Source: Piromyces finnis finn (taxonomy: Eukaryota; Fungi; Neocallimastigomycota). Taken from it: a DNA stretch of 64,000 nt. Position numbers and translations under genes: made by a program. The notes under the pieces were generated by a model, which worked only from the letters and a program-made list of their open reading frames with translations, did not search any database and was not told where the DNA came from. The stretch spans positions 558,001 to 622,000 of the forward strand of contig MCFH01000028.1 of NCBI GenBank assembly GCA_002104945.1. Direction: 5' to 3'. Positions 25,353 through 57,946 of this stretch are shown one piece after another (position 1 is the stretch's first letter; every line of letters starts with the position of its first letter).

Positions 25353-25434
25353 CGTCAGCTGCAGGGTTTGAACCTGCGCGGGCAGAGCCCATCAGATTTC
25401 AAGTCTGACTCCTTAACCACTCGGACAAACTGAC
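25353..25434 (-). tRNA. tRNA-Ser, anticodon UGA, intronless, 82 nt
   Basis: Reverse complement is GTCAGTTTGTCCGAGTGGTTAAGGAGTCAGACTTGAAATCTGATGGGCTCTGCCCGCGCAGGTTCAAACCCTGCAGCTGACG. It shows an acceptor stem, A box, anticodon loop CT-TGA-AA, long variable arm, B box GGTTCAAACC and G discriminator. Confidence 0.96.
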
Positions 25435-26412
25435 TATTACTGTTAAAACGTTGATAACGGATTGGTAGTTATATTACAACTTTTTAACTACTTCTTCTGT
25501 TATCTTATATTGTTTTATCTCGACAGCTATTGTACGAGCTTTAACAATATCTACTAGTTTTATTAATTTATTTTAAGTTATTTTATAATTTTAATAGTTT
25601 TATTATTTTAATAATATTTATATAGAATAATAACACCAGATTTATTCTATAAAATATTATTTATTATTAACACAATAATTACAAATTAGACAAGTTTAAT
25701 TTCGTTTTTATATTTTCTTTTATTTATTGTTCTTACGCTCTTTTTAACAATAATTTTTATTATATAAAAACTTATTTTTTGTCTTTTAAATATTATTATG
25801 TATTCACTAATTAATTATATTAACTATTATTAAAATTTAACTTATTATTAGTAATCTAAGTCTTCTTATTTTCTACTAAAAAATATTATTATTCTTTATA
25901 TTAAAAATTATTTTTATAATTTAACCCAATCAAATATATAAATTTATAAAATATTTGATTTTATGTAAATTATATTTTTATAATAAACTATATAAAATTA
26001 TTTAATAATTATTTTATAATAAAATTTTCTACTAATATCAAATTTATAATATATTTATAATTATTATTTATCAAGATTTCCTCCCCTAAGATACGACTTA
26101 GTGGTAGCTGATAAAAATATTCATAAATAATAATAAATATATAAGTTTTTGATATTTTTATACTAAATATTTAAAAATTTAAAATTTTTTTTTCTATATA
26201 TATATATATATGATAAAAATAATATAAAATAAGGTTTATAAAAAAAATGATGAAAAATTTGAAAATTTTTATTAATAAAATTTTTTTTCAAAGAGAAATA
26301 AAAAAAATGAAGTGAAATTTTGTTAAATGTCGTAGTGTAAATATTTTTGTGTTTTTATATATTTTTGTAATGTAATTGTCGTATTATTTGTATATAAATG
26401 TTTAATGTGGTT

Positions 26413-28410
26413 TTATCTTTCTTTAAACTTTGAAAATAGATGAAATTTTGATTTTAATATGTCGAAATAATGTCGTTTTAAAATTGAAGTTACTGATTTG
26501 ATATAATCTTTTAGATTGAAAATAATTGAATTTGAAATACTTTCTTTTACACTTTTTATTATACTGAAATATATATTCTTAAACGAATTATTTGATGAAT
26601 TTTTGATTATATCATTTTGTTTATTTCGCTTTTTTCTTGATTTTAATTTCCTGTTAATATTAATATTCAAATGATTATATTTTAGAATTTTACTTTTATT
26701 TTTATATATCTTGATTTTGTGGCATTTTTCGTGAATAATTGGCGTTTTTTCTGCTTCATCACGGCCGACAAGATTTGACTTATTAATTGAAAATTTAATA
26801 AGTGAATCGTTTTTAATTCTTTTTGGAAATTTGCTGAAATTTGAATGAAAAATGTGATATTTTGGATAAAAATATTTATTTTTAAATTTGAATAAATGTC
26901 GAAATTTAATTGAATAAAAAAGTTTGTTTTTATTGTTAAAAGTCGAATTAAAATTTTGAATTTTGATATTATTATTAAATGAATTAAATTGAGATTCATT
27001 AATATTTGATGGATTGAAACAATGAATCATTGAAATATTTGAAAGATTATTTTTATTTTGTTTAAAATTTGAGGGACGAGCAACCATAATAGGAGATGAA
27101 TTAGTTTTCATGTAAAGAGAGTCATCATCAGGATCAATGTATAATCGGTGATTCTTTTGAGATTGACGACCTAATATAATATCATAACATGAATCTTCAT
27201 CTTCTAGAATCCAGAATAATGCATAGATTTTTAAATCACCAAATTTAAGAGTTAAATTAACAGCTTGATTTGTTGAAATAACTTGTTTGCTAGCTAATTT
27301 AAAGAAAGTTCTCTTAAAATGTGTAATATTATGATTTGCTGATATTAAATTAAAGAAGGATTTAGTAATAACATTAACATCAGAACCAGTATCTACTAAA
27401 ACTCGGACAATGTTATTATCAATTGAGCCAATGACAGAAGCAATGTTGATTTTATTAATGACATTAATTTCGTTATCTGCTATATTGATAATATCATCAT
27501 CATTGTCATTATCAGCATCATCATTGTTTTCATTATTTTTATTATTATAATTTTCATTAATGATATTAATAAATGAATTAATATCATCATCATTAAGATC
27601 CATATTTTGAATGGCGTTTATTTTCCGAACATCATTTGGATCAAGCTTTAAACCTTTGGCACAAAGTCTTCTGATGATAGGACTGACTGCAAGCAATTGT
27701 GCAAAAGAGATACCAGCATTTGTATTATTAAGGGCATCAAAAATATTATATTCTTTATTTTTGCCCAACATGACAATAGAACGTAGGAAGTCATAATAGT
27801 TGCTTTTGGGAGACTTTTTGCTATCTATAACTTCTTCTAATTCGTCCTGTTTACTTGGTATATCTGGACCAATTCTTCTTTTATTTCTGGTTTCTTTATT
27901 TTTCATCTTAGCAGAGGAAATATTCTTGCCTGCAATTACCGAGGGGTCTAAGATGTCTAGGCGGGAAGTAGTGGTATGAAAATTTGAATTTTTCTCATTA
28001 CGAATTTCTTGCTGTTCTTTCATCTGAGTGGCCTTTGTATGTATTGGTAATGGATTTTCTCGAAGTTTCTTTTTCTTCGACTGAGTCACGTGATCCTCAT
28101 CATCACTTTCATCACTTTCTTCAGAACTTTTTCTCTTGAATGCATAAATAAGGTTTTCGATGTCCTTATCATCGACTGTATTTGTCACGTGATCACGTGT
28201 AACGTAATCCTTATCATCTTCATTGATTGGATCATCCACCAAAGGGTTAGAGAATTTTTCTTTAGAATTTGGAAATTTTTTTGTTTTATGGAAATCACGT
28301 GTATCATCAACATAGATTTGCTCATTAATGTTGTTGATGTTGTGGGTTTGGTTATTATCAATTTTGGAGTTAGAAGGGGAAGATTGAGAACTTCCCCCAT
28401 TTAATTTAAA
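26413..28410 (-). CDS. E1 second ORF (-1 frame): spacer + retropepsin-type aspartic protease + low-complexity tail
   Basis: Open from the T TTA AAT slip site into the 609-aa ORF. Contains VLVDTGSDVNVI and YDIILGR, and no YxDD. Confidence 0.85.
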   Translation of the reverse strand, partial: FKLNGGSSQSSPSNSKIDNNQTHNINNINEQIYVDDTRDFHKTKKFPNSKEKFSNPLVDDPINEDDKDYVTRDHVTNTVDDKDIENLIYAFKRKSSEESDESDDEDHVTQSKKKKLRENPLPIHTKATQMKEQQEIRNEKNSNFHTTTSRLDILDPSVIAGKNISSAKMKNKETRNKRRIGPDIPSKQDELEEVIDSKKSPKSNYYDFLRSIVMLGKNKEYNIFDALNNTNAGISFAQLLAVSPIIRRLCAKGLKLDPNDVRKINAIQNMDLNDDDINSFINIINENYNNKNNENNDDADNDNDDDIINIADNEINVINKINIASVIGSIDNNIVRVLVDTGSDVNVITKSFFNLISANHNITHFKRTFFKLASKQVISTNQAVNLTLKFGDLKIYALFWILEDEDSCYDIILGRQSQKNHRLYIDPDDDSLYMKTNSSPIMVARPSNFKQNKNNLSNISMIHCFNPSNINESQFNSFNNNIKIQNFNSTFNNKNKLFYSIKFRHLFKFKNKYFYPKYHIFHSNFSKFPKRIKNDSLIKFSINKSNLVGRDEAEKTPIIHEKCHKIKIYKNKSKILKYNHLNININRKLKSRKKRNKQNDIIKNSSNNSFKNIYFSIIKSVKESISNSIIFNLKDYIKSVTSILKRHYFDILKSKFHLFSKFKER

Positions 28411-29255
28411 TGGTTTTGGGTTTTGAGGAGGGTAGCTATGATTTTGTTCACATCGGTCATTTCGTTTGGGCAGAAGCGGGCATCATGTCCTTTCTGGTTA
28501 CAACGGTGGCAGATATGAATTTTCATCTGGGCAAAGCTTTTGGTCAAAGCATCCAGATCTGATTCTTTAGCTTCTTCTTTAGTAGTCTTTTCATTATCAG
28601 TACTACTATTATTTTCGTTATTATTATAAGAGGTTTTATCTTCAACTTCTGTTTTTCTCTTATAATAATTATTTTTGTTTTGAGTTCTTTTATTGGGTAC
28701 ATATTCATCATCACTTTCATAAGCAGATAGAAGCTCATCTGCTTTAATAGCAATGACCATAGCATCCTTTAAAGTTTTTGGTTGTTTGTTAATAAGAGAA
28801 TTTAATATAGAAGTTCTCCTATTAAAAGCTTTTGTATAAAGAAAAACAAGTCTTTCTTCAGAAGGCTTGTCCCTTTCTTTAATTTCTTTCAAGAGGTCAT
28901 TGAAGGAACGATTGAATTCTCTAACTGAACTCTTGTTTATTTTAATTTTTTCTAGTTTATTGAGGTTCTTATTGGAAGTTTTATCATCCTCAAATAAGTT
29001 AGATATTTTATTGATAAATTCATTATAAGATAGGGATCTATCTTCATAATAAATATCGCTACAAAGATCCTTAGTTTTGTCCGAAGTAGCGATTAGAGCA
29101 ACTCTTTTTTTTTCTTTTTCAGAAAGGTTTAAGTCCTCCAAGATATCTTCGAGTTCCATCTTCCATCTAAAGAACTTGGTAGTTTTCTTTCCGAGAGGGC
29201 TTATTTCTTTGGCCATACTTGCGGCTCTTTCAAAGTTATTCTTATCTTCGGACAT
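28401..29255 (-). CDS. gag: E1 Gag with CCHC zinc knuckle
   Basis: 284-aa ORF with CHRCNQKGHDARFC, ending ..HLN* at the slippery site. Confidence 0.88.
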   Translation of the reverse strand: MSEDKNNFERAASMAKEISPLGKKTTKFFRWKMELEDILEDLNLSEKEKKRVALIATSDKTKDLCSDIYYEDRSLSYNEFINKISNLFEDDKTSNKNLNKLEKIKINKSSVREFNRSFNDLLKEIKERDKPSEERLVFLYTKAFNRRTSILNSLINKQPKTLKDAMVIAIKADELLSAYESDDEYVPNKRTQNKNNYYKRKTEVEDKTSYNNNENNSSTDNEKTTKEEAKESDLDALTKSFAQMKIHICHRCNQKGHDARFCPNEMTDVNKIIATLLKTQNHLN

Positions 29256-29340
29256 ATTTATTAATTTAATTAAATAAATATGCTATATATATAAGTAAAC
29301 AGGAATTTTATATTTTCGGCTATCCCACGGGACGACTGAG

Positions 29341-29351
29341 GTTCTCCACCA
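29341..29351 (-). promoter_or_regulatory. E1 primer-binding site, tRNA-Ala type
   Basis: TGGTGGAGAAC is complementary to a ..TTCTCCACCA tRNA-Ala 3' end. Confidence 0.8.
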
Positions 29352-29979
29352 CTTGATAACGGATTGGTAGTTATATTACAACTTTTTAACTACTTCTTCT
29401 GTTATCTTATATTGTTTTATCTCGACAGCTATTGTACGAGCTTTAACAATATCTACTAGTTTTATTAATTTATTTTAAGTTATTTTATAATTTTAATAGT
29501 TTTATTATTTTAATAATATTTATATAGAATAATAACACCAGATTTATTCTATAAAATATTATTTATTATTAACACAATAATTACAAATTAGACAAGTTTA
29601 ATTTCGTTTTTATATTTTCTTTTATTTATTGTTCTTACGCTCTTTTTAACAATAATTTTTATTATATAAAAACTTATTTTTTGTCTTTTAAATATTATTA
29701 TGTATTCACTAATTAATTATATTAACTATTATTAAAATTTAACTTATTATTAGTAATCTAAGTCTTCTTATTTTCTACTAAAAAATATTATTATTCTTTA
29801 TATTAAAAATTATTTTTATAATTTAACCCAATCAAATATATAAATTTATAAAATATTTGATTTTATGTAAATTATATTTTTATAATAAACTATATAAAAT
29901 TATTTAATAATTATTTTATAATAAAATTTTCTACTAATATCAAATTTATAATATATTTATAATTATTATTTATCAACGT

Positions 29980-31079
29980 TGATACGCTACTCACATAAAA
30001 ACGTAATAAAAACTAGCCGAATAAACACGACTTAACCCATAGCGACTTATAATAAAAATAAAAGATAATAACCCTTAAAAATGAATAAATAATAATTTTA
30101 TGGAAATATAACCCTTTCTTTTAAATAAATAATATTCTCTTTATTAAATAATAAATTATGAATAAAAACGACTTAATAGAGATAATAATAAAATAAATTA
30201 TTAAATAAAATAAAACGACTCAATCCAAAAATGTATTAAAATAATAAAATAATAATAAGTAAATAAAAATGAATAAATAAACTAAAAAAATAAAATGATA
30301 TACATTAAATTATTAATTCTAGTGTTTTATCCAAGTGTTCTTTAGAAATTCTTTCAAACTTATATATATAAATTAACAAATAAATAACTGAGTAATTATT
30401 ACTAAAAGTGATTAATTTAAAGCCTGGAAATAGAACAATAATAACAATTTTAAAGATAAAATACAGAACTCTTTTATGTTTCTGTATAAAATGTGTTTAT
30501 ATTAATTGATACTTTTAATATTTGATTTTATTAATTTTATTTCAATTTTTATTTTAATTTTTATTTTAATTTAATATTATTTTAATTTTAAATTTTAATT
30601 ATTTTATTCAAGGTATTATACATTTAATGATAGTTAATGATAATTTATAATAGTTTTTCTAATTTTAAACATTTTGAAGTAATAAGAAAATCAAATAAGT
30701 AATATTCTATAATATTTTATAATACTAAGACATAATTTTAATTTATTCTTTTAATTTTAATAAATAATAACAATAGTAATAATAACATTTAATAGTTAAA
30801 AATAATAATACATGTAATAAATGAAAATGTATAAAAGGAAGATAAAATTCTTCTTTATAAGGGGCGGACAATAAATAGACAATAAATAAATTATAAATAT
30901 AATAAAGAGATAATTTAAACATAATAAAAAGAGTTTATTTTCGAGTTTTTGAGTGATTTATTTGTTAATTATAAAACATATTTTATTTTATTTTAAATTT
31001 ATTGTTTCATCATAAATATTAGAATTTATTATTTATTAAAAATATTATATTATTCAAAAATATATCGGTCAACGCATCA
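29980..31079. mobile_element. Z: probable solo LTR (1100 bp), termini like E2 LTR
   Basis: Starts TGATACG and ends CGCATCA (E2 LTR: TGATAC..GCATCA). Flanks ACGT / ATGT fit a 4-bp TSD with one transition. No second copy in the window. Confidence 0.6.
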
Positions 31080-31082
31080 ATG

Positions 31083-31884
31083 TGATAAATAATGAAATTA
31101 ATAAATATAAAATTATTATTATACCTGATTTTTAAGTTAACCCTAAAAGTAACTTAAAACAAGTTATAGTTTAATTAAGTACTTTACCAAAATTCTTAAA
31201 TAAAATTAATCCTAAACACTGCATATGTTTTGATTATTGAAAGAAAATAATAAACTTTAATTAATCGAGATCAAAATATATAACTTTTGTTAAATTAATT
31301 GTTAAATTAAATGTTTAATAACTTCGTTAGTAAATTACACTTTAAAAGTAAACAAATATAATAATTCATGTTATAAAATAATATAATTAAACACTTTTAT
31401 TAAAATACTAAAAATAATTATTACTTTAATTAATTGTAAAATAAACAACTTTTTATATTCTTTAACTTTTAATTATTTCTTTTATTGTTATTTCTAATTA
31501 CTTTTATTGTAAATAGTTATTAATTTTATTGTTTTAATGTAAATAGTTTAAATTCAAAAGAAAATATAAATACATGTAAATATTCTTATTTTAATCATTA
31601 TTATTATTATTAATAAAGAAATATTATATAGTTAGATTAATATTTTATAATTTTAATAATCACTTTTATACTTAAATAAATAAAATTTTAAATATTTAAA
31701 TATTAGAAAAACAAGTGTTTCTAATAAAACAATTTAGTGTTTTAACAAAACAATTTTATTAATTTTTATAAAAACGATTTTAAATCTTAATCAATATAAC
31801 TTATATAGTTATAACAAAAGATATAATATAATAATCACTTTTTGAAGTAAAATTCAAAATTAAGATTATTATCAAATTATATCA
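31083..31884. mobile_element. W: probable solo LTR (802 bp), termini like E1 LTR
   Basis: TGATAA...ATATCA, flanked by AATG (31079-82) and AATG (31885-88). Confidence 0.6.
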
Positions 31885-32656
31885 AATGTTGATACAAGAT
31901 GCATAGAAAAATATAATATTTTAAATATTTTATGAATAATATCTAATCCTTTTATAAATTGTATATCAATTACTAATGATAATAATAATTAAACTATATT
32001 AGTATAAATTATTATGACGCAAATGTTACACATACATTAGAATAATTAGTTACACAAGAAAGGAAAAGATATAAAAGAGAGTGTTAAAGCAGAAGATATC
32101 AAGAGAGAGAACTTTTCATTTATAAATAATTTTTGATATTTTAGTTTTAAGTATTAGTTTTATTTTATTTTATTTTTATATTAATAGTTTTAGTTTAAGT
32201 TAGTTTTAGGTTAATAATTACGTATTTAGTATTTATTATATTTCCTTCAGTTTAAATATTAGTTATAAAAGAAAAGAATATTTATTGTTTATTTTTACTA
32301 TTTCAGAAAAGTTATATTTTATCATTAATAATACTTTCATCAACATATTTTTATATTTACACATTATATTTAACTATTTATATTTATTCAATAATAACTT
32401 TCGATCCTATTAGTATTGAATGTTATTAATGTTATAATCATAATAATAATAATAATTAAATAAAGAATCTTTAAACCAAAATCTATTTAATTATATTATT
32501 ATAAAATTTATTATTTTTATTATTTATTTTTATTATTATAAAATAGAAATAAATACAATATTAACTAATATATTATTCATATATCATTCCCTATTGCTAA
32601 CGTTCATAATTATATTTTATTTATGGTGTTTTTGAAATATATTGCATCATAAAATT

Positions 32657-32673
32657 TGGTGGAGAATCCGGGC
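32657..32673 (+). promoter_or_regulatory. E2 primer-binding site, tRNA-Ala type
   Basis: 17-nt TGGTGGAGAATCCGGGC, 7 nt after the LTR. Confidence 0.85.
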
Positions 32674-32905
32674 GTAGCAATATTGAATAATATGAAACAT
32701 TAATAGTATTATTTCTATTCTAATTATATTTATTTTTTTTTTTTATTATTTTTAATTAAAATAAGTTCTTTTATATAAATAAAACTTTCTACTATAAAAC
32801 TATTAAATATACACAAATATTATATATATATATATAAAATTATTATAACAATAATATATAAGAAGTTATTATATAAATTTATTTTAAAATAAATAAATAA
32901 TTAAA

Positions 32906-34363
32906 ATGGTTGACGCCACTAAAGTAAAAAGAGACCTTCCATACCTCTGCGATTATGGAAAGGATATTGATTCCTGGATGGAGGATTTTATAAGTGTCAT
33001 GGAGATCCATGATATACAAGAGCCCTCTAGAATATTTATGTGGTTAAAAGTTGCCGTTGAAGCAGATATCAAGAATGTTTTGAAATCTTTATGTACCTCT
33101 CATAATAACGTTAAAAGGTATCCTACTTATAAAGAGGTACAATCTGCTATTGAAGATTATCTGGAAATAAAGCCAGGGGATAAATGTTCAGTATTAAAAA
33201 CATTAAAAATTAAACAAAACGAAACTATAAAAAGCTTCAACTATAAATACTTAACTCTTTACCACCGCTTGGAAAGAGATTTTATGAAAATTATTTCTGT
33301 GGATGACTATTTAAACTCTATTAAGAAAAGAGTTTATCCACACTCCCAAGTTATATTAGCCGAATGTGAAACATTATCTGAAGCTTTTAAAGTTGCTGAA
33401 AAGGCTGAGAAAGCCGAAAGAAGAACCATAGAAAGTACTGAAACTAACAATATTTCTATGGTATACCAAAATACAAAAAATACTCGAAATGTTTTGTTAG
33501 ACCATCCGTTATATAGAGGATTAGTAGATGATGATAATGTTAATATTAACCATAGCAATTTTAATAACTCTTATTCAAATTATGTACAAGAAAAGCCTAT
33601 CGGAAGATCCTATCCAGGTATCCCAAGAAATTATGAAAATGTGTATTTTAATAATAGTAACTTCCGGAGTATCAGATGTTACTATTGCAAGCAAATGGGA
33701 CATAAAGCTAGTGAATGCCCAAATAAAAGAGAAAGAAATAATTTCAATAATTTCAATAATTTTAATCAATTTAATAATCAAAGAAATTCTTATAACAGAT
33801 ATGGAAATTTATATAATAATAATGATAACAATAATTACAACAATAATAGTTATTTAAATGGATTTAATACTAATACTAATAACAACAACCAAAAGGATAA
33901 TAGAAACATTAATGAAAATAATTATATGGATTATCATCATAAAAATAACTATAATAATATGAATAACAATTATTATATGTACACCAATAATGATTATAAG
34001 AAAGGTAATTTTAATCCAAATGGAAATTACAATTATAATGAAAGTAATAATATTAATAGCTACAATAATTATAATAATACTATTGGATATAATGGATATA
34101 ATAATAATGGTTTTAATAGTTATAATAAAAACAACACAATGAATAATAATACATTTAATAACGTCAGTAATGTTAATAAGAATAATATGAGGAACAACAT
34201 TAATGATAGTGATAACAGGAACAATATTAATAATAATTACCCTAATCAATTAAATAATCAATATTATAATAATTATTATAATAAGACCTTACCAGAAAAT
34301 AATTACAATAAAGCAACCAAAATAAATTTAAACAATCCATCTGAATCAAATAATTTAAACTAG
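32906..34363 (+). CDS. gag: E2 Gag with CCHC knuckle and long Asn-rich tail
   Basis: 485-aa ORF with CYYCKQMGHKASEC. Confidence 0.9.
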   Translation: MVDATKVKRDLPYLCDYGKDIDSWMEDFISVMEIHDIQEPSRIFMWLKVAVEADIKNVLKSLCTSHNNVKRYPTYKEVQSAIEDYLEIKPGDKCSVLKTLKIKQNETIKSFNYKYLTLYHRLERDFMKIISVDDYLNSIKKRVYPHSQVILAECETLSEAFKVAEKAEKAERRTIESTETNNISMVYQNTKNTRNVLLDHPLYRGLVDDDNVNINHSNFNNSYSNYVQEKPIGRSYPGIPRNYENVYFNNSNFRSIRCYYCKQMGHKASECPNKRERNNFNNFNNFNQFNNQRNSYNRYGNLYNNNDNNNYNNNSYLNGFNTNTNNNNQKDNRNINENNYMDYHHKNNYNNMNNNYYMYTNNDYKKGNFNPNGNYNYNESNNINSYNNYNNTIGYNGYNNNGFNSYNKNNTMNNNTFNNVSNVNKNNMRNNINDSDNRNNINNNYPNQLNNQYYNNYYNKTLPENNYNKATKINLNNPSESNNLN

Positions 34364-34587
34364 TTTATGGGAGAAGGACAACTCCCAGTAATCAAACCAA
34401 GTTTGGCAATTCTTTTGATTCAAATGATGAAATAAATGAAAATATTATGTATGTTCATAATAATAATAATGAACTAAATGGGAATAATTATTTCTATGAT
34501 AGTCATAATGTTAATTTTAACAACAATCCTAATACTAATTTTATTTATAATGATACTAATAATAATAATAATAACAATTCTTATGAT

Positions 34588-34632
<45 letters not shown>

Positions 34633-37600
34633 TCTTATGATATTAATAATAATAATAATTATATATATGACAATAATACTTATGTTTATGATATTAAACA
34701 CAATGATAATAATTATGATATTAGTGATAATAAGGATAACTATATATATAATGAAAATAACTATGATGTTTATGCTACTAACTATAATAATCATGATGAT
34801 AATAATAATAATAAAGACTTTAACATAAATTGTGAAAATATTTATAATAATATCAACGAATATAAATGTAACAATATTAATAATATTAATAAAGACAATG
34901 ATAAGTACATGGAAAACAACAATAATGTTTATGAGAAAGATTATGGAATATTAAATAATTCTTGTGGGTGTGATAGAAGTTGTACATCTAATAATAATAA
35001 TATGATAAGAAATTGTAAGACATTAAATATAAAAGAACAATATTATAATAGACAACAAGAAAATAAGAATGAGTACTGACATATAGGTGAAGATAATGAA
35101 GTGGTAGCTGTTACTCAGAAGAATGAAAAATTAAATAAGTCTAAAAGGTTAACACCATTTAAAGATACCGAAAGAAAATTAAAAGAAAACCCTATTCCTT
35201 TTAGCACACCTGCTTTAAAATTAGCTAAACGGAAAATGAACAATAATAAAACTAATAAAAGCGTAGCTATGGATGAAGATACCACATTAGAGGAAACTAT
35301 TGAAACCAATACTATGAATGAAAATAAAAGTCCAGATAATAATCCAAAGAAGGAAAAACAGGTATCATTTTCTGAAGATGTGAAATCAATTAAAGAATCA
35401 GAAATAATAGTTTTAGATGATAATATTACCAAAGGAAATAACAAAAGTGATAAAGTCTTAGAAACCACTAATGATACTAGTAAAACAAATAAATTAAATT
35501 ACTTAGATTTGTCTGTTATAAATAAACCCAATATTTCAAATGCAAAAAAATTAAGTAAACAAGAAAAATTAAATGAAATAAAGAATAATTTAAATGATAG
35601 TATAAAAGAAATCCAATCTCTGAGTAAAACTAGTAATCCAAAATTAGAAAAACATATTAAAATGATGGAATTAATTGATGATTTCAAAATCAATGATTTA
35701 ATAAAAGAAGTTGCCTCTACTGATGTAGTAACAAAGTTAGGTTATCTTTTAGATTTATTTCCGAAATTTAGATCCGAATTTATTAAAGCTTTGAAATTAA
35801 AAGAAATTGATAAGAAATCTCTAATAAATGTTATGACTGTTATTGGAAGTCATAAAGTCATTAAGGTTAATGGATTTATAGAAAATCGACCATCGGAAAT
35901 ATTCTTAGATTCTTGTGCTAGTGTAAACCTAATTACTACTGCTGCACTAAAGAAATTCAATATCAAGAAATTACCAGTTGGTAGAGTATCTGAAAAAATA
36001 TTTCAAGTGTACTCAAATAGTTCTATTGATTCAAATATCTATGAACTTAAGATTACAATTGGAAATCACACATTTACAGATCACTTTAGAGAGGTAGAAA
36101 AAGATGATATCTTTGATGTACTTGTTGGAATTGCTACATTGAAAAGAAATAATTTTATTTTAAATTTAGTTGACGATTCTTTATTACATGTTAATAATAA
36201 TAATGAATGTATTAAATTAACACATTTACTCTATGATGTAAATTTTAATAATTCAAATAATATTAATAAAGATGATGATAAAAACTATATAGAGTACGAG
36301 TTGAGTAAATTTAATAGTGTGTGTTCTAATAATAATGCTCCTGATAAAATTTCCAATTTAAGAGTTTCTGATTTTATAAATAACTGTGAAAGTAATATAT
36401 CTTATGTTCCTAATAATATTACTACTAAAAATAGTTATAAATCTGATGATAATGCTTTATTTAAAAATTCCTGTTCTAGTCCACTTCCTGTTTTTATATC
36501 AATTGTCAAAGAAGATATCTCTTCTAATATTTCTAATAATAATGGTAGTGATAAGAAGCAGCTTATTATAAATGATATAATAAATGAAATACCTATTGAT
36601 AGTAGAAATAATATAAAGCAACTATTTTCTGAGTATAGAGATGTAGTGGCAATAAAGACAGATGATTTAGGTCATTCTAAATTAATGCCACATAGAATAA
36701 ATTTAGTTCCTGGAACCCAACCTATTAAACAACATGCATATAGATTATCTAAAGTGCAAGCTGATGCATTAAAAAATGAATTAATTAAGCTTATTGATAA
36801 TAAATTGATTGTTCCTTCTAGTTCGTCATGGTCATCCACAGTAGTCTTAGTACCTAAGAAGAATAATCAAATAAGAATGTGTGTTGACTATAGAAAGGTA
36901 AATAATTGTACTATAAAAGATGCATATGCACTTCCCTTGATTGATGATATTTTATACTATGTGGGTAATGCTACTATTTTATCTACTATTGATTTGTTTT
37001 CGGGTTATCATCAAATACCTATGCATCCTGATGATAGAGACATAACTTGCTTCACTACCATATATGGAAATTTTAATTTCCAAGTTATGCCTTTTGGACT
37101 TTGTAATGCACCGGCCACTTTTCAACGTGAAATGAATCGTATATTTTTTGATTTAATTGGTGTATGTGTATTTGTTTATATAGATGACCTTGTTATTTAT
37201 TCTAATTCATTGGAGCAACATTATGAAGACATCAAAAAGGTTTTTAAAATTTTACATAATAACGGTTTAAAAATTAATGTAGAGAAATGTCATTTTTTTA
37301 AAGAAGAAGTGGAACTACTTGGTCACACTCTTTCTACTAAAGGTATTAAACCTATTGATTCTAAAGTTCAAGTTATTATTAATTGGCTACCGCCTAAAAA
37401 TATTAAACAATTACGTTCGTTTTTAGGTGCTATTGGTTATTATAGAAAGTTCATTTCTAACTTTGCTCAAGTAGCCAAACCTTTATATGATCTAACAAAA
37501 AAGAATGTTACATTTGAATGAAATGATATTTCTAATAATGCTTTTGATACTCTAAAAAATAAATTAGCTATCGCACCTATTCTTACTCCTCCAGATTTCA

Positions 37601-38001
37601 ATAAACAATTTATAATACGTACTGATGCATCTAAATCAGGAATAGGTGGTGTACTTATTCAATTAGATAATGACGGCTTTGAAAAACCTCTCTATTTTGA
37701 AAGTAGAACATTATCTAATTCAGAATTAAATTATAGTATTACTGAACTTGAAGGATTAGCTGCTTTTTACTGTGTGTGTAAATTCAAACCATTTATAACT
37801 GGCAACAATCTTGAAACATTGTTGTATACTGATCATAAACCTTTGGTCTATATTTTTAATAGTAAAGAACCCTCATCAAGTCGTCATGTTAAATGGATAA
37901 CAGAGTTCAGCATTTTGAAGGTTAAAGTCTTATATGAAGAGGGGAGGAAGAATGTTATAGCTGATGCTTTATCAAGACTTCAAAGTAAATCAGGAAATGA
38001 A

Positions 38002-38104
<103 letters not shown>

Positions 38105-38678
38105 TAAATGAAAAATATGATAGCAGAAAAATCAATAATATAAAGGATATAATGGAAGAAAATATAATTAAAAATAAGAAAGAAGAATGTTCATTATTTA
38201 TAAATGATAATACAGCAAATAATAATAATATAAATAATGATTTATTTAATAATACTAATATTCCAGATAATAAACTTGGAAAAAATTATGTTAATAATTA
38301 TAATATTAATTATGATAAAAATAACAAACTGAATGATATGATATTAATTGGAAATTATAATGAAAATTGTAAAACAGATTTTGATTATATAAATAATGGA
38401 AATGATAATAATATAGAAAGTGATAATAATAGTGATATTTGTAAAGACAATAATAATGTTATGATAAATATTAATGAGAATAACAACAAAAGAAATATGA
38501 ATGATAATTATCTATATTCAAATACGAATAATAATAGAAATATGCTAAACAATTTTATTGAAGATTTTATAACTAAAAGATTTGTATACATTGATGGAGT
38601 TCAATATTATAAACAAAATGATTTATTAAGAAAAGTTATTACAAATAGTGATGAAAAATGGAAACTAATTAATGAAGC

Positions 38679-41256
38679 TGTAAAAGTTTTATAAATGTAA
38701 AACAGATTATAAAATTTTTTACAATAAAACAACAACACAAAATAAAGAAAAAACAAGAAAATAAATTATATTTAAAAAAATATCTCTTTTATTAATTTTA
38801 TTTAGTTATTAACTAAATAATAGTCAATAACAATTACATCGTTTTAATTAAGAAAATTTACATGCATTTATATTTTTCGTAAATTATATTTTAATATACT
38901 ATTCTATTTAATTATACATATATTCAATATAAAATAAACAAAACTAATTTAATACTAATTTAATTAAATAATAAAATAATAAAACTAAACTAAAACTAAT
39001 TAAATACACTTTTGATTCAATTTGAGTAAACTGTAAATTGAATACAGTCCATGTATTACCTATATATTAATTAAATATTAATAATACTATTTATTATATA
39101 TTTATAATTAAAAATGCTAATTTAAAACTACGCTAAAGTTATTAAACTAATTTTAATTAAATAAAAACTTTTTAAGATTTAATTTGAATATTTAAAATAT
39201 TTAAATTTAATTATCCATTAATTTAAATATTCATCCAAATTTCATTTGTAACTTTGATATTTTAAAATTAATATTTATTTAATTATTCCATAAAATTTAT
39301 ACAATAAATTTTATAAACAATTTTTTCATTAAAATATCAAAATTATTATTCAATAATTATTAATTAATTATTAAATAATTTAAAGATATACTTTATATCT
39401 TTACAATCTCTCCCTTTAAGTCGAGCTCCTGCGAGATCATTTCTTTGAAGGAATATCAATTACAAATGGTTGATATCTATGTCTGATCATACCATTGTTA
39501 TTCCTTGTATAAACTTGATCTTGACTTTCTTTTCTAGACTTTTTATTTTTCCTATAAAATTCTTGGATCAATTGTACATCTGAAATTTGATCTTCCGGGA
39601 TCCAAGTATTTTCGTCAAGATTTTTCCATGTCATCAAGAAAGATTTCTTTCCATGATAATTTCTTTCTTGAATAATCTTATCAGGAATCCTATCACTTTC
39701 TTTGTTTTATGTTGCAAAGTCTTCCATTTGCAACAATTGTGTCATTATTGGGATCCCCGAAATTGGTACGAAGGGCAGCAATAAATTGATCATAGTTTCT
39801 TAGAATGGCGTCGTTGTTCTGTCGTAAACGAGCGGCCCATTCTAAAGGTCTGTTAACAAAGTAAGATATTAAGAAGCGAACTCTCGCTTCATCATTAGCG
39901 AATCTATCAGGGTTGGCTTCAATGGCTAGTTCAACCCTGGTCAAGAACCCATCTAGTTCTTGTCTTCTTCCTGAGAAAGTTGGAGGATCATTAACTATCC
40001 TCAAAGACGCCCCTTGACGGTCCATATTTCCGTTTAAGTGGAGGTTGGATAAAAGTTGGTTTATTTCTTCCAGTATGTTTAATATTTACTTATTTAATTT
40101 TTTACAATATTTTAATTAAGATGTCGTCGTAACTCTATCCTATCAAACGGTGTTAGACGAGCTCTTAAAAATATAGTAACAAAATTAAATACAGTACAAT
40201 AGTAGATGTTGGTGGAAGATTAAATAAAGTTGATCCACAATATATACAAGTACAATGATGGACGCGGTAGATATCTCTAAAGCAAAGTAGTCGTTCTAAA
40301 TGACACGGTAGCAATACCAAAACGCGGTAGATAATCCTTTATTACGCGGTAGCAAATTTCAAAGTAAGGTAGAGAGTCCCTAAAACGCGGTAGTTAGTTT
40401 CTAAACACGGTAGCAAATTTCAAAGCAAGGTAGAGAGTCCCTAAAACGCGGTAGTAAAAAAAATTTTATTAAATATGTTTTATTAAAAAAATTTATAACG
40501 TGTTTTATTAGAACAAAGGTAATTGTTATTGTAAAAGTTTTATAAATGTAAAACAGATTATAAAATTTTTTACAATAAAACAACAACACAAAATAAAGAA
40601 AAAACAAGAAAATAAATTATATTTAAAAAAATATCTCTTTTATTAATTTTATTTAGTTATTAACTAAATAATAGTCAATAACAATTACATCGTTTTAATT
40701 AAGAAAATTTACATGCATTTATATTTTTCGTAAATTATATTTTAATATACTATTCTATTTAATTATACATATATTCAATATAAAATAAACAAAACTAATT
40801 TAATACTAATTTAATTAAATAATAAAATAATAAAACTAAACTAAAACTAATTAAATACACTTTTGATTCAATTTGAGTAAACTGTAAATTGAATACAGTC
40901 CATGTATTACCTATATATTAATTAAATATTAATAATACTATTTATTATATATTTATAATTAAAAATGCTAATTTAAAACTACGCTAAAGTTATTAAACTA
41001 ATTTTAATTAAATAAAAACTTTTTAAGATTTAATTTGAATATTTAAAATATTTAAATTTAATTATCCATTAATTTAAATATTCATCCAAATTTCATTTGT
41101 AACTTTGATATTTTAAAATTAATATTTATTTAATTATTCCATAAAATTTATACAATAAATTTTATAAACAATTTTTTCATTAAAATATCAAAATTATTAT
41201 TCAATAATTATTAATTAATTATTAAATAATTTAAAGATATACTTTATATCTTTACA
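38679..41256 (-). mobile_element. E4: 2578-bp internally deleted chromovirus-type mini element
   Basis: 727-bp LTRs 38679-39405 and 40530-41256. 5-bp TSD GAAGC (38674-78 and 41257-61); removal restores NEAHSIGHEG of E2 integrase. The 1124-bp interior has a Gag N-half (39693-40025) joined to a chromodomain-like tail (39437-39690). PPT AAAGGGAGAGA. Confidence 0.93.
40310..40460 (-). repeat. Short direct repeats with ACGCGGTAG cores in the E4 5' leader
   Basis: TAGCAAATTTCAAAG(T/C)AAGGTAGAGAGTCCCTAAAACGCGGTAG occurs twice, plus extra CGCGGTAG/CACGGTAG cores. Confidence 0.8.
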
Positions 41257-43106
41257 GAAGCTCACTCTATTGGTCATGAAGGAACATACAAGACATATCA
41301 CAGACTAAGAAGAGATTATTTTTGGAAAGGTATGACAAAGGATATTAAATTATTTATTAAATGTTGTCATAAATGGCAAACACGTAAACCGCAACCAACT
41401 AATATGTATCCGGAAGATTTAGCAACTCCTCCAGGTTTACCATTTAGTAGAGTTGGTTTAGATTTAATAGGTCCGTTATATACCACTGCTAGAGGAAATA
41501 AATATATAATCGTATTGGTAGATTATTTAACCAAATGGGTGGAAGCAGAACCTTTAATGAAAACGGAATCTGAGGATGTAATAAGATTCCTTACTAATGT
41601 ATTTTCAAGACATGGTATACCAGAAGTATTAATTACAGATAATGGACCACAATTCATATCTGATAAAACAAAAGCTTTTCTAGATTTACATGATGTATAT
41701 GTTCATTATATTAGTACCTATCATCCAGCCTCAAATGGAGAAGTTGAAAATAGAAATAGAGAAATATCAAAATACTTACGATTATTAGGAAAGAAAAATA
41801 AAGATTGGGATGAAACACTACCTAGTGCATTATGGGCCCTTAGAACTGCAAAAAACGAAGTTACAAAATTTAGTAGTTTTGAACTCCTATACGGAAGAAG
41901 AGACCTCCAACCATTTGAACTTAGTATCAATGTTGATAAAAGGTTAAAAGAAGAAAATGAAGAAGAATATTATATTAGGAAATTTATAAATCATAACCAA
42001 TGGATTAAAGAAGCAATAAATAATATTGAAACAGCTAATGAGCTATGGAAAGATAGAAGAAGACAAATCAAAAGACTACGTAGTGAATTTAAGCCTGGTG
42101 ATTTAGTTCTAATTAGAAATTTTAATAGAAGAAAATTAGATCCTTATTATCTTGGACCTCTAAAAATTGTAAAACAACAACTTAATACTGTAACAGTATG
42201 CGATCCAATTACAAATGATATTGCAGAAAGAAATATTCATTTAAAGAATGTAATTCCCTATATTAGTAGTTTTATTGAAATGAAACATTAATGAAAAATA
42301 CGACGACTTCAAGGGACGAAGTCTTATTTAAAGTGGGGGCCTCCTGATACAAGATGCATAGAAAAATATAATATTTTAAATATTTTATGAATAATATCTA
42401 ATCCTTTTATAAATTGTATATCAATTACTAATGATAATAATAATTAAACTATATTAGTATAAATTATTATGACGCAAATGTTACACATACATTAGAATAA
42501 TTAGTTACACAAGAAAGGAAAAGATATAAAAGAGAGTGTTAAAGCAGAAGATATCAAGAGAGAGAACTTTTCATTTATAAATAATATTTGATATTTTAGT
42601 TTTAAGTATTAGTTTTATTTTATTTTATTTTTTATATTAATAGTTTTAGTTTAAGTTAGTTTTAGGTTAATAATTACGTATTTAGTATTTATTATATTTC
42701 CTTCAGTTTAAATATTAGTTATAAAAGAAAAGAATATTTATTGTTTATTTTTACTATTTCAGAAAAGTTATAGTTTATCATTAATAATACTTTCATCAAC
42801 ATATTTTTATATTTACACATTATATTTAACTATTTATATTTATTCAATAATAACTTTCGATCCTATTAGTATTGAATGTTATTAATGTTATAATCATAAT
42901 AATAATAATAATTAAATAAAGAATCTTTAAACCAAAATCTATTTAATTATATTATTATAAAATTTATTATTTTTATTATTTATTTTTATTATTATAAAAT
43001 AGAAATAAATACAATATTAACTAATATATTATTCATATATCATTCCCTATTGCTAACGTTCATAATTATATTTTATTTATGGTGTTTTTGAAATATATTG
43101 CATCAA

Positions 43107-43601
43107 TGTAAGAAATATTTGTGGCCATAAGTTTGCCCACAAATATTTCAATTGAAACCATATATTCTGGTCATCATTTATTGGCCAAATATATGTATAA
43201 CCATATATTAATGGTTATTAATTAAATAGGAAGTTTATTTGCTTTACCCAATCAAGTGGTAAAGAAAGTAAACTCATATAGTTAAATAGTATAGTCAAAA
43301 CTAACGTTAAATACTTTAGCGTTAGTATTAAAGTAAATTAATAGCTATAATAATAATTAATGTAGATAATTATAATAAATAAATAAAAGATATAATTAAA
43401 ATATAATTATTTAAGTAAAAGTTATTTCATAAAATATTTATATAAGTGTTTATATTTATTTTAGTGTTATAATATTTATTTTCTTTCTTTTATTATTTTT
43501 TATAAAACTTTATTTAGTTATTAACTCGTATAGAGAGGTAATAACTAACTTAATTAACTAATTAGTAACTTATTAACTAATAATATAAAAAACCTTTTAC
43601 A
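43107..43601. mobile_element. X: probable solo LTR (495 bp)
   Basis: TGTAAGA...TTTTACA with a 13-bp hairpin at its start. The reconstructed flanks are TAAAA / CAAAA. Its first TGT forms part of the E2 TSD. Confidence 0.6.
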
Positions 43602-43608
43602 CAAAAAA

Positions 43609-44318
43609 TGTTAAGGAACCAACAAATAATGTTATTCTTGTCATAATTAATGATTATGACCTAATCCATTCATTATTGTTCCTAAATGTATGAAAACTTT
43701 ACAATATTCTTATTTGTAAATTAATGTATACACTTAAATTATATTTAAAATTATTAATAATTATTTTTATTGAACTTAAATTTTATTTTATTAAACTTAA
43801 AAATTAATTTAGTAATAATAATATATTGAAAATTATAGTTTATTGAACTTTTAGTTTAATTTATCAAGTTAATGAATTTTTATTAATTAAAATTATGAAT
43901 AATATTTCTGTAAAATAGTAAAATTCTTTAGTTAAATATATTTAAAGTAAACTTTTAATGTATGCTAATCAATTTAATAATATGTATAAATATTTATTAT
44001 AATAGTAATGTAATTTTATTATTCATTTAAAAGTAATTTAAATACTAAAATTAATGTAAATAATTAAAGACTAATTCTTTTAATTAACACTACTTAATTT
44101 TTTACAAAAAGTATAAAAAGGTGTATATTATAAGAATTAGAGAATATACAGATATTTTTATTTTTATTTTTATTTTATTTTATAATTTTATATTAATATC
44201 TTAATAAAACAATTTTATTAATAAAACAATTTTTCTTATTTCATTTTAATATTATTTTTGAGTATTAATAAATTTATTAATATTTTATAAATAAAAGTAA
44301 ATTCCTCGAACCGTAACA
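43609..44318 (+). mobile_element. Y: solo LTR (710 bp) of the E3 lineage
   Basis: TGTTAAGGAA...GAACCGTAACA versus the E3 LTR TGTTAAGGAA...GAACCGTAGCA; flanked by AAAA/AAAA. Confidence 0.75.
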
Positions 44319-45187
44319 AAAATGTTAAGGAATGAACATAAATAGTTGAATTAGCTAGAATTTTAGGATTTAACCTTCAACTATTTATATTCCTTACTAG
44401 TGTTTAACTCTATTTTTAAAATATAAAAATTATAATATATAATTTTTATACATTTTCTAGTAATTATTAATATTTTTATTATATAGTTATATTATTTGTA
44501 TATAGTTATTTAAGACCTTTATTATTAGTATTAGTATAATTACTTATAATATTTTATACTTATAAAATTTTACAAAATTTTATTATTAAAATAGTTATAG
44601 GTATTTTATTATTATTTAAGGTTTATTTTATTAATTAACTTTATTGTATAATATTTTATAATTTGAAATTATGACATAGAATTTAATTATAATTTTTACT
44701 AAAAGAGGCAACTGTTACACACAAAACAGAAGATACCTCGACAGAAAAATTATTATTTATGTCTAAAAAAGGGCATAATTAATTGAATAATATAATTTTA
44801 TTATATGTCATAATTAAATATATAATATATGATATGCAAAAATGTTACACATATCATAAATTAAAATTTTATTAATTATAAATTAAAAATTTTTCTATTC
44901 AAATATTAAGAGATTATTCATAATATATATTAAGGATTTAATTAATATATGTTACAGTGAATGATCCATATATTATGAATGAAATCAATTTAAATCCTTA
45001 GCTATCCAAAACCATTAAATTTCAAATAATGGATAGTTGGAAAAAGTACGAGGATTTTTGAGAAAAATTTTAAAAATTGAAAAATCAAAAATAAATTAAA
45101 TGAATAAAAATTAAAATTAAATAAATTTTTATCTTTATAACTATTCAAGTGTTTTGTGATATCTTATTTGAACCGTAGCATAATTAA

Positions 45188-45206
45188 TGGTGGAGATATC
45201 GGGGAT
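45188..45206 (+). promoter_or_regulatory. E3 primer-binding site, tRNA-Ala type (different 3' arm from E2)
   Basis: Complementary to ATCCCCGATATCTCCACCA; 7 nt after the LTR. Confidence 0.82.
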
Positions 45207-45594
45207 AATAATAACATATTGATATCACACTACATTTTTATAGTTACTTTTATATTTATTTTTGTATTATTATTTAATTAAAATAGTTAATAATTCAAAA
45301 GAGGGTTATACTAGTATAATAAAAAGTTATATACTTCAAGGCACAATTAAAATAGTTAATAGAGAGAAATTAATATTGTTAATTGGTGCAGTTAAGGAAG
45401 TATTTTATATTGGTATTACTAGTTTAACTAAAGAGAATAATTATTAGTGTTGTTAATTAAATATATTTCAAATATTGTTGTAATTCATTCTTTTAAATTC
45501 TTATAAAAGAAAATTATTTTTTTTAAACTTGTTTCATTCTTTAATATTATTGTAAAATTGTATTTTTATCTTTATTTAAAACTTGTATATAAAA

Positions 45595-47235
45595 ATGAGT
45601 ACGGGAGCTGATAAATCTATTGACTTTGCTAAATTAATGAAGGAATTAAAGCATGTCACTAGATTAACCGAAGATAATTTGGACATTAAGACTTGGTATA
45701 GTCAATTAAAGTATTGGACTATGCTTCAAGATGTTAAAAGTCCAAAAATGGTGTTTCTAGCTTGTTTGTTTACTACTACAGGAACACCAAATGAACTTAT
45801 TCAAGAGTTGAATCCTAATAAGGACTTTGAAAGTGATGAAGACAGTGAAGATAGTGATGAAGAAGATGAAGGTAGAGGAAAGAGAAGAGCTCACTACCCT
45901 TCCCTTAAAAAGATAGTCACTATGTGTAAAGATATAAAGTATATCTTTAAATTATTTAATAATTAATTAATAATTATTGAATAATAATTTTGATATTTTA
46001 ATGAAAAAATTGTTTATAAAATTTATTGTATAAATTTTATGGAATAATTAAATAAATATTAATTTTAAAATATCAAAGTTACAAATGAAATTTGGATAAA
46101 TATTTAAATTAATGGATAATTAAATTTAAATATTTTAAATATTCAAATTAAATCTTAAAAAGTTTTTATTTAATTAAAATTAGTTTAATAACTTTAGCGT
46201 AGTTTTAAATTAGCATTTTTAATTATAAATATATAATAAATAGTATTATTAATATTTAATTAATATATAGGTAATACATGGACTGTATTCAATTTACAGT
46301 TTACTCAAATTGAATCAAAAGTGTATTTAATTAGTTTTAGTTTAGTTTTATTATTTTATTATTTAATTAAATTAGTATTAAATTAGTTTTGTTTATTTTA
46401 TATTGAATATATGTATAATTAAATAGAATAGTATATTAAAATATAATTTACGAAAAATATAAATGCATGTAAATTTTCTTAATTAAAACGATGTAATTGT
46501 TATTGACTATTATTTAGTTAATAACTAAATAAAATTAATAAAAGAGATATTTTTTTAAATATAATTTATTTTCTTGTTTTTTCTTTATTTTGTGTTGTTG
46601 TTTTATTGTAAAAAATTTTATAATCTGTTTTACATTTATAAAACTTTTACACTATGTTAGAAGAATTTTATGGAGTAAAGGAAGATCAAATAGAACTTCT
46701 CAAGGAGCTTAGGGATATGCGAATCAAAAAGAATGAAAAAGTAAAAGACTTCAACATAAGGTACCGTTCCTTGTATGTCAAACTAGACAAGAAGCGTAGA
46801 AGGAAAGTAGATGTTGAAGATTACTTAGATTCCATTGAGCCTAACTATAAAGCCTGGGAAAATGTGCGTAGGGAAAAAGAAGTTACCTTAGCAGAAGCCT
46901 ACAAGCTTGCCGAAGATGGGGATAGACTAAATTTAAGAAATCGTCATAAAGCTAACAATTATGATGTATCCACCTCTTCTAACTCTGATAAAAGATATAA
47001 AAATAAATATGAAAGAAAAGAAGATAGCTATGAAAGGAACAAGAAGCCAACAATAGCGAATTATGGTAATGATAAGAAAGATCCTATGAATGAGTTGACG
47101 GAGAAAATGAGAAACTTAACTATCAAAACTTGCTACTTTTGCAACGAGAAGGGACACTTTCAATATCATTGTCCTAAACTGAGTGCCATAGTAGAAGAAA
47201 ACAAACAAAAGGCCAGAAAAGGTCATTTAAATTAG
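45595..47235 (+). pseudogene. gag: E3 gag interrupted by solo LTR
   Basis: Removing 45925-46656 restores KIVTMLEEFYGVK. Contains CYFCNEKGHFQYHC and ends GHLN*. Confidence 0.9.
45925..46651 (+). mobile_element. Solo LTR of the E4 family (727 bp)
   Basis: Reverse complement of the E4 LTRs (at least one substitution); 5-bp TSD CTATG (45920-24 and 46652-56). Confidence 0.95.
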
Positions 47236-56846: not shown

Positions 56847-57118
56847 TAATAGTTATTAATTTAAAAAAAAAAAAAATTAGTAATTGATAAGAGAAAAAGA
56901 GAATAGAAAATAAAAAATGAAAAAATATATTTATAATTTAATATTCATGTAATTTAAAAAAAAAAAAAAAAAAAAAATTTCAAAATGTATTCACTCGTTT
57001 CAATTATTTCTCTTATAATAAAGTAACAAATAAATTTAGTTGATTCGTCTGGTATCCGAATCCTGGAGGAGGACCATGTAACGAATCATAGAAATTAGTA
57101 ACCTGTCTTAGTGGTTAG

Positions 57119-57907: not shown

Positions 57908-57946
<39 letters not shown>

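Follow-up and report, generated by a model that had tools for sequence, protein, structure and literature searches.

The window analysed here is a 64-kb stretch of contig MCFH01000028.1 of the anaerobic gut fungus Piromyces finnis, with a G+C content of 17–33%; the assembly searched with it comprises 56.46 Mb in 232 contigs. ARAGORN and reading of the sequence identified a tRNA-Ser(UGA) gene on the minus strand (25353–25434), the sole tRNA that ARAGORN called in the window, with its mature 5′ end at 25434 and a T-run terminator after its 3′ end. Because the gene lies on the minus strand, its upstream side runs towards rising coordinates. This side is occupied by a chain of seven abutting Ty3/gypsy elements or solo long terminal repeats (LTRs), in the order E1, Z, W, E2, X, Y and E3, whose limits were defined by self-BLAST and direct reading of the letters. 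Neighbours in the chain are 2–7 nt apart, the gap between W and X being measured with E2 taken out.

A 17-nt spacer (25435–25451, TATTACTGTTAAAACGT) separates the tRNA from E1. Its last four nucleotides, ACGT, are the proximal copy of the E1 target-site duplication (TSD; 25448–25451), and the second copy lies at 29976–29979. E1 (25452–29975, minus strand, the same orientation as the tRNA) is a non-autonomous element of 4.5 kb belonging to lineage A, a grouping defined below from protein comparison. Its 622-bp LTRs (25452–26073 and 29354–29975) are 100% identical and its primer-binding site (PBS), TGGTGGAGAAC, is found at 29341–29351 on the minus strand. Two solo LTRs of lineage A follow on the plus strand: Z (29980–31079; 1100 bp, TGATACGC...GCATCA), with the TSD ACGT on one flank and ATGT on the other, and W (31083–31884; 802 bp, TGATAAATAATG...ATTATATCA), with the TSD AATG. 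E2 (31890–43105, plus strand) is a full-length lineage A element interrupted by an insertion termed N. The E2 LTRs (31890–32649 and 42345–43105) are 99.6% identical, the PBS (TGGTGGAGAAT) is at 32657, and the TSD ATGT is present on both flanks (31886–31889 and 43106–43109), the distal copy overlapping the first TGT of X. X (43107–43601, plus strand; 495 bp, TGTAAG...TTTTACA) is a chromovirus-related solo LTR with a 5-bp TSD, TAAAA/CAAAA, and Y (43609–44318, plus strand; 710 bp, TGTTAAGGAAC...CGTAACA) is a solo LTR closely akin to E3, with AAAA on both flanks. E3 (44323–64000, plus strand), delimited by self-BLAST, reading and Pfam, is a full-length lineage A element that exits the window, its distal TSD lying beyond the edge. 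It contains a 5′ LTR at 44323–45180, a PBS (TGGTGGAGATATCGGGGAT) from 45188, pol at 47685–51203, and a 3′ LTR that begins at 51228, is interrupted at 51419 and continues from 63672.

When the elements were removed stepwise, each with one TSD copy, the next LTR end was found 17, 17, 16, 17, 14, 16 and 16 nt from the tRNA. An earlier note on this DNA had proposed such a seven-step reconstruction, at 14–17 nt from the tRNA-Ser, and re-reading of the letters returned the same distances. The joint probability of chance matches for the ACGT, ATGT and AATG TSDs is ∼7e-8 in this DNA of ∼80% A+T; taken by themselves, the A-only TSDs of X and Y tell little. The empty E1 site, in which the tRNA-Ser would be joined straight to Z, had no match in a whole-genome search.

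The identification of Z, W, X and Y as LTRs was borne out by their copies elsewhere. In whole-genome searches X, Z and W each have at least 40 copies and recur as same-strand pairs at a constant spacing of ∼6.3 kb for X (6.2–6.4), ∼8.7 kb for Z and 7.59 kb for W; these LTR-centred statistics derive from coordinates alone. A full-length X at L061:389–7104 (L numbers denote the sampled loci) contains one gag-pol open reading frame (ORF) of 1801 amino acids. In L032 and L076 the Y copy is adjoined by an E3-type PBS, and in L026 and L028 by a polypurine tract together with an integrase that shares 83% identity with that of E3. Copies of Z in L021 and L024 adjoin a polypurine tract and an integrase 44–53% identical to those of E2 and E3, and the W copy in L019 adjoins an integrase 51–52% identical to them. 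The hallmarks of Ty3/gypsy elements, namely TG...CA LTR ends, PBS and polypurine tracts, are present, and the Ty3/gypsy domain order RVT_1, RT_RNaseH, Integrase_H2C2 and rve is detected by Pfam, intact for E3 and X and fragmented for E2.

The association with tRNA genes was examined genome-wide in a tRNA-centred sample. The 63 best-scoring genes by the Rfam tRNA model were chosen blind to transposons, and 50 of them were read with their flanks; merging identical upstream sequences and counting each tandem Glu(UUC)-Arg(UCU) or Gly(UCC)-Thr(UGU) pair as one left 43 distinct units. An LTR terminus is present 11–18 nt upstream in 34 of the 43 and at 22 nt in two more, where ∼0.04 units would be expected by chance at roughly one LTR end per 10 kb. 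The enrichment at tRNA 5′ ends anticipated by the earlier note is therefore found across the genome. With six units found through E1 added, the count becomes 40/49 at 11–18 nt, with a mode of 14–16. X lies 11–12 nt from the tRNA in all of its cases (7/7), and E1, E2, E3, Y, Z, W and the further families F1, F3 and F4 lie at 13–18 nt. Eleven tRNA species and at least 10 LTR families take part and the spacers differ, which excludes the copying of a single tRNA–LTR block.

The tRNA genes include many copies of the two tight tandem pairs (L033–L061, L062–L081), which have spacers of 9–10 nt for Glu(UUC)-Arg(UCU) and 5–7 nt for Gly(UCC)-Thr(UGU). LTRs are found upstream of the first member only, suggesting that the pairs are dicistronic RNA polymerase III (Pol III) units. 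In two of the 43 units the LTR end is tied to a damaged tRNA-Glu. X stands 11 nt upstream of a tRNA-Glu with a 10-nt deletion in the D arm in L038–L040, and in L052 an LTR terminus lies within a truncated tRNA-Glu, 28 nt upstream of the tRNA-Arg; some insertions or later deletions therefore harm the first tRNA of a pair.

A second sample was centred on E1 and consisted of 30 fetched E1-LTR loci (L001–L030). Besides the window, the E1 LTR is 14–18 nt upstream of a tRNA at four of the 30 loci (tRNA-Trp twice, Ser(GCU) and Glu(CUC)), which with the window makes five different tRNA genes. At a further locus a solo E3 LTR, 13 nt from the tRNA, sits between E1 and tRNA-Thr(CGU). Most of the remaining E1 copies abut other LTR termini, and Rfam detected no other Pol III genes beside E1 in 20 E1 loci. 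At L017:2123–2215 a tRNA-like relic with TGGTTGTTAAGGCG and GGTTCGACCCC boxes has a solo E1 LTR (TSD AAAT) 13 nt upstream of it. The relic keeps its B box and is called by neither ARAGORN nor Rfam; LTR ends of this kind may point to Pol III genes that have decayed or are missing from the annotation. The kept B box, and the restriction of LTRs to the first tRNA of a tandem pair, give an indirect hint of dependence on a Pol III promoter.

Insertion is precise enough for the same base pairs to be used repeatedly. On C155 (L008/L010) the order is old E1, TAAA, E1, TAAA, E3, TAAA, AGATATCAT and tRNA-Thr, and in L077 ATTC was duplicated by both E3 and Y. Since the same 4 bp are reused at a given gene, adjacent LTRs are usually one TSD length apart, and the junction between the end of Z and E1 measures 4 nt in 7/9 cases genome-wide. 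The junction between the end of Z and the start of W measures 3 nt in 16/16 exact matches, and in 26/26 with one mismatch allowed; nine different triplets occupy it, indicating independent events. This 3-nt gap (within 31077–31086 in the window) is sharper than would be expected from the 14–17 nt range over which W and Z lie from tRNAs. A fixed 1-nt offset between the W and Z integrases at a gene-fixed anchor would explain its constancy, although recognition of LTR termini could also produce it. E1 is always 3 nt farther out than X, at 14 versus 11 nt from the tRNA, and leaves a gap of 1 nt in L027 and L030.

The TSDs also record the order of insertion. The overlap of the distal E2 TSD with the first TGT of X places E2 later than X. 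In L029/L030 the E1 TSD, ACAA, repeats the terminal ACA of X on the tRNA side, and E1 must therefore have entered between X and the tRNA. In both cases the TSD carries terminal bases of the older LTR to the tRNA side, which supports the polarity put forward in the earlier note, with the newest element nearest the tRNA. Paralogous Glu-Arg loci provide an empty and a filled X site: L035/L037/L041 read ...CCGTTATA-GATAA-AGAGTA-tRNA-Glu, and L054/L061 contain X with GATAA duplicated. Orientation is biased as well. The 5′ LTR faces the tRNA in six of the seven elements of the window, E1 being the exception, and genome-wide in 17/18 distinct cases of E2, E3, Y, Z and X, with E1 found both ways. The bias suggests a single asymmetric contact.

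Taken together, the stack very probably results from repeated, position-specific integration of Ty3/gypsy elements just upstream of one Pol III-transcribed gene, by integrases most likely tethered to the Pol III complex. Beyond the observed anatomy, TSDs, insertion order, tRNA association and integrase architectures, this reading calls for a tether, which by analogy with Ty3 would most likely be TFIIIB/TFIIIC. The integrase would insert new complementary DNA (cDNA) at a spot fixed within ∼1 nt relative to the tRNA gene, 13–18 nt (lineage A) or 11–12 nt (X) from the mature 5′ end, presumably in the region of the Pol III start site. It would be held there by the transcription complex, with TFIIIB placed by TFIIIC. 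As the complex would re-form at a constant distance from the internal promoter, regardless of the upstream sequence, the same target would be available again after each insertion; the next element would then strike the same 4–5 bp, shift the older ones outward and leave a TSD-sized gap.

Several observations weigh against this reading. Five of the 43 units lack an LTR terminus, namely Leu(CAA), one Gly and three Thr(UGU), and many copies of E1 are flanked by LTRs on either side, with no tRNA closer than 1.5 kb. The absence of a chromodomain from lineage A, described below, means that, even if lineage A acts much as Ty3 does, any tether must do without the chromodomain–Brf1 contact and so differ in part from that of Ty3. 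In addition, the tRNA sample consists mostly of four multi-copy tRNA species, and the sequence read amounts to only ∼0.27 Mb of a 56-Mb genome.

The doubly flanked E1 copies could also be accommodated if new elements recognised the termini of resident LTRs, the tRNA having merely seeded the first insertion. The LTR–LTR gaps are strikingly constant at the Z/W and Z/E1 junctions, and the Z/W junction of the window parses both ways, with AATGT on each side. Constant gaps are also predicted, however, by a gene-fixed anchor with small family offsets, such as the 3 nt by which E1 stands beyond X. Moreover, the 11–18 nt spacing is kept where the other flank is no LTR, as for the solo E1 LTR in L017, and wherever a TSD overlaps the terminus of a neighbour by at least 2 nt (E2 over X; E1 over X in L029/L030), the duplicated bases are always on the tRNA side. 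LTR-end-directed nesting is thus improbable.

Random integration with survival only upstream of tRNA genes, where purifying selection would spare the insertions in a 'safe haven', is still less likely. The genome is gene-dense and survivorship shapes transposon landscapes generally, but 1-nt precision, reuse of the same 4 bp and family-specific offsets (X versus lineage A) are beyond the reach of selection, which also leaves the orientation bias unexplained. The pattern is already present in copies with 100% identical LTRs; the identity of the E1 LTRs and of its at least 40 copies (99–100%) means that long-term filtering cannot account for it, and the elements M1, M2 and N have survived at other places in this genome. 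Mis-assembly of repeats, or a block copied by segmental duplication, is very unlikely, for although the region is nearly all repeats and some tRNA plus LTR loci are exact duplicates on different contigs (L037, L041), random mis-joins would not yield a matching TSD at every junction, the same architecture occurs at many tRNAs with different spacers and partners, and the tRNA-Ser/Z junction has no second copy in the genome.

The LTR families show no alignment with one another beyond low-complexity matches, and relatedness was therefore judged from proteins; the first 11 nt of the LTR, TGATAAATAAT, are common to E1 and W. Lineage A comprises E2, E3, Y, W, Z and F1, whose integrases are 44–83% identical, and includes E1 more distantly, via its protease. 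The earlier note had spoken of several unrelated families. More than one lineage is indeed involved, but protein comparison joins E1, E2, E3, Y, Z and W into one pol lineage. E1 consists of gag (Ty3_capsid) and a protease-containing ORF, without reverse transcriptase or integrase, and is nevertheless present in at least 40 genome copies at 99–100% identity, all ∼4.5 kb long (LTR spacing 3.90–3.92 kb); it must therefore be mobilised in trans.

TSDs of lineage A are consistently 4 bp (>25 cases read). E1, E2 and E3 share a −1 frameshift cassette, with a slippery TTTAAAT/TTTAAAC at the gag stop, a GGGAG...CTCCC hairpin after it and pol in the −1 frame. The PBS of E3 and Y corresponds to the 3′ end, with CCA appended, of the tRNA-Ala(UGC) gene in L075, and that of E1 and E2 ends in ...TCTCCACCA, the signature expected of tRNA-Ala. 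tRNA-Ala is thus the predicted primer, by match to the gene for E3 and Y and by the 3′-end signature for E1 and E2. The 4-bp TSD, −1 frameshift and tRNA-Ala priming that had been attributed to the families at large hold for lineage A, the latter two in the members read, whereas X has a 5-bp TSD.

X belongs elsewhere. Its pol is 33% identical to that of E3 and 43–50% identical to those of M1 and M2, two chromoviruses nested in the stack. TSDs of X at five other loci are all 5 bp long (TTATC, ATTTT, TAATT, AAAAT and GATTT), so that the 5-bp TSD is the norm of the family and no exception in the window. No TGG-type PBS was found after the 5′ LTR of X (L061:883–1183). The 5′ LTR of W is followed by TGGTCCTTCGAACCGGAG (L059:150–180), which does not seem complementary to the 3′ end of any normal tRNA. 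As far as these sites predict, priming differs among the LTR families. A further chromovirus relative, F2, has its terminus 15–18 nt from tRNA-Arg and an integrase 44% identical to that of M2 over the aligned stretch. Besides lineage A, at least one chromovirus-derived lineage (X) and probably two (X and F2) are therefore found at tRNAs. At least two pol lineages target tRNA genes in one genome, in which sister chromoviruses with an intact chromodomain nest in transposons.

These nested elements lie away from the tRNA anchor. M1 (51420–63671, plus strand), a chromovirus with a canonical chromodomain, is inserted in the 3′ LTR of E3 with the 5-bp TSD TTTAA, and M2 (57119–63303; 5-bp TSD GTTAG) is inserted in the 3′ LTR of M1. 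N (38679–41256) is a non-autonomous element of 2.6 kb inside E2 pol, flanked by the 5-bp TSD GAAGC and bounded by two LTRs of 727 bp with 100% identity, and a solo N LTR (45925–46651, minus strand; 5-bp TSD CTATG) lies inside E3 gag. The earlier estimate that more than 38 kb grew from one point needs correction accordingly: the chain is anchored at the tRNA, but ∼15 kb of 25452–64000 consist of M1, M2 and N inside E2 and E3. The N LTRs are 68% identical, in inverted orientation, to part of the M2 LTR, and N copies are 99.9–100% identical to one another, indicating recent movement. The LTRs of M2 are 96.8% identical and those of M1 100% over 368 aligned bases. Since M2 sits inside the 3′ LTR of M1, it should be the younger of the two, whereas LTR divergence says otherwise; recombinant cDNA and gene conversion are possible causes of the mismatch.

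The C-terminal parts of the integrases differ between targeting and non-targeting elements. In M1 and M2, neither of which adjoins a tRNA in any of the nine copies seen, Pfam identifies SH3_Tf2-1 followed by a canonical Chromo domain (E 1e-17 in M1 and 1e-5 in M2). X has SH3_Tf2-1 and a 77-residue tail without a Pfam Chromo match. This tail aligns with the chromodomains of M1 and M2 but lacks two of the three residues of the aromatic cage (Phe stands in place of Trp, and one Tyr is missing). A structural model of the X C-terminus (predicted local distance difference test score 78) has as its best match in the PDB 7q5b, the Ty3 integrase in the TFIIIB-bound intasome. The next matches are chromodomains at template-modelling scores of 0.75–0.82, and the Foldseek E-values are weak (7e-3). 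Among the tRNA-targeting families, X is the only one modelled to have a Ty3-type tandem of SH3 and degenerate chromodomain, and by analogy it plausibly works as Ty3 does. In F2 the integrase ORF ends right after the SH3 domain, without a chromodomain.

Lineage A integrases have a different ending, consisting of a 44-residue helix and an SH3-like domain, after which the protein terminates within 0–26 residues. This ending is kept in E2, in E3 and in 81/81 relatives that align across the C-terminal part. The model contains only a long helix and a small β-barrel, and its best structural matches are foamy-virus and Ty3 integrases. The Ty3-type tandem of SH3 and chromodomain was not found by Pfam, alignment or modelling in E2, E3 and the 81 relatives. 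In PDB sequence searches lineage A and X match Ty3 about equally well. Relatives of lineage A pol at 40–75% identity are numerous in ENA/JGI metagenome sequences and also occur in Orpinomyces, which, on sequence similarity, makes it probable that the targeting trait is widespread across the phylum. On four metagenome contigs (L082–L086) whose proteins are 68–74% identical to E3 pol, neither a tRNA nor an assembled LTR pair was present, and a metagenome scan returned only relatives at 25–33% identity.

A more far-reaching interpretation is offered tentatively, as one that could about as easily fail as hold. Three integrase designs may have been retargeted independently to the Pol III start region: lineage A, which never had or has lost a chromodomain, X, in which it is degenerate, and F2, which has lost it. 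The tether of lineage A would then be unlike the chromodomain–Brf1 contact of Ty3, most tRNA genes would seed transposon islands of tens of kb, and LTR ends would flag Pol III genes to the exact nucleotide, unannotated genes among them.

tRNA genes are the textbook example of a 'safe' landing site for transposons, and the present system is a well-populated instance of Ty3-like targeting of Pol III genes in anaerobic gut fungi, that is, a known kind of system and not a new one. Its most notable features are a chromodomain-less lineage with 4-bp TSDs, convergently retargeted chromovirus relatives, occupancy of ∼80% among the tRNA units sampled, and reuse of the target almost to the nucleotide. 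The system provides a further, independent example for the study of integrase retargeting, in which two or three integrase designs and very young families of high copy number are found within one genome, and it ties loss or decay of the chromodomain to a switch from heterochromatin to Pol III genes. Lineage A should reveal a second mode of docking on the Pol III machinery. Targeting of this kind also explains repeat islands around tRNA genes in the hard-to-assemble genomes of gut fungi. Few genetic tools exist for anaerobic gut fungi, and the integrase is a candidate for site-specific DNA insertion in these organisms.

In the literature searched, no report was found of tRNA-gene targeting by retrotransposons in Neocallimastigomycota or in anaerobic or early-diverging fungi, in agreement with the earlier note, which knew of no description in this group. 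The tRNA-targeting elements tabulated in a review (Ty1-4, Ty3p, Tj1, Tca8, Tyl3, Ylt1, Tyl6, DGLT-A, Skipper-2 and TRE) are all from ascomycete yeasts or dictyostelids (PMC5911963). The closest yeast systems are Ty3 of Saccharomyces cerevisiae, Tj1 of Schizosaccharomyces japonicus, Tca8/beta of Candida albicans and Tyl3/Ylt1/Tyl6 of Yarrowia lipolytica. Ty3 insertions lie 1–4 bp away from the site of Pol III initiation (PMC5911963, Table 1), and the Ty3 integrase, which makes a 5-bp TSD, contacts TBP through the SH3 domain and Brf1 through a vestigial chromodomain (PMC8632968). Like Ty3, the elements described here are Ty3/gypsy elements with the order protease, reverse transcriptase, RNase H and integrase, which insert within a few nucleotides of one spot upstream of a tRNA and leave the tRNA intact. 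X resembles Ty3 further in its 5-bp TSD, its C-terminal SH3 and degenerate chromodomain, and its best structural match, 7q5b. Lineage A differs from Ty3 in its 4-bp TSD, its −1 frameshift (+1 in Ty3), its tRNA-Ala primer and its lack of a chromodomain. Ty3 inserts in both orientations, for which a second contact, made with Tfc1, has been held responsible (PMC5911963), whereas a strong bias with the 5′ LTR towards the tRNA is seen here. The host, moreover, belongs to an early-diverging phylum, Neocallimastigomycota, and copy number and occupancy are far above those of Ty3, which has two full-length copies in S288C.

The dictyostelids offer a second parallel, since there too several Ty3/gypsy lineages converge on tRNA genes in one A+T-rich, gene-dense genome (PMC5006619). 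DGLT-A of dictyostelids inserts ∼15 bp upstream of tRNA coding regions, and Skipper exists in a canonical-chromodomain form without tRNA targeting and a diverged-chromodomain form with targeting (PMC5006619), a split that parallels M1/M2 versus X and F2. However, Skipper-2 inserts downstream of the tRNA and X upstream, and DGLT-A has one ORF, in contrast to the gag and pol of lineage A, which a −1 frameshift connects. The dictyostelid hosts are Amoebozoa and the present host a fungus, and high copy number, called an exception there (PMC5006619), is found here.

For the C-terminal part of the lineage A integrase, the best structural match is the integrase of prototype foamy virus (E 1e-6). In sequence, too, the integrase part of E3 matches that of foamy virus at E 2e-30, against E 4e-9 for X. 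Prototype foamy virus also makes a 4-bp TSD. Foamy virus is an animal retrovirus without tRNA-gene targeting, and the likeness is one of intasome geometry, not of target choice.

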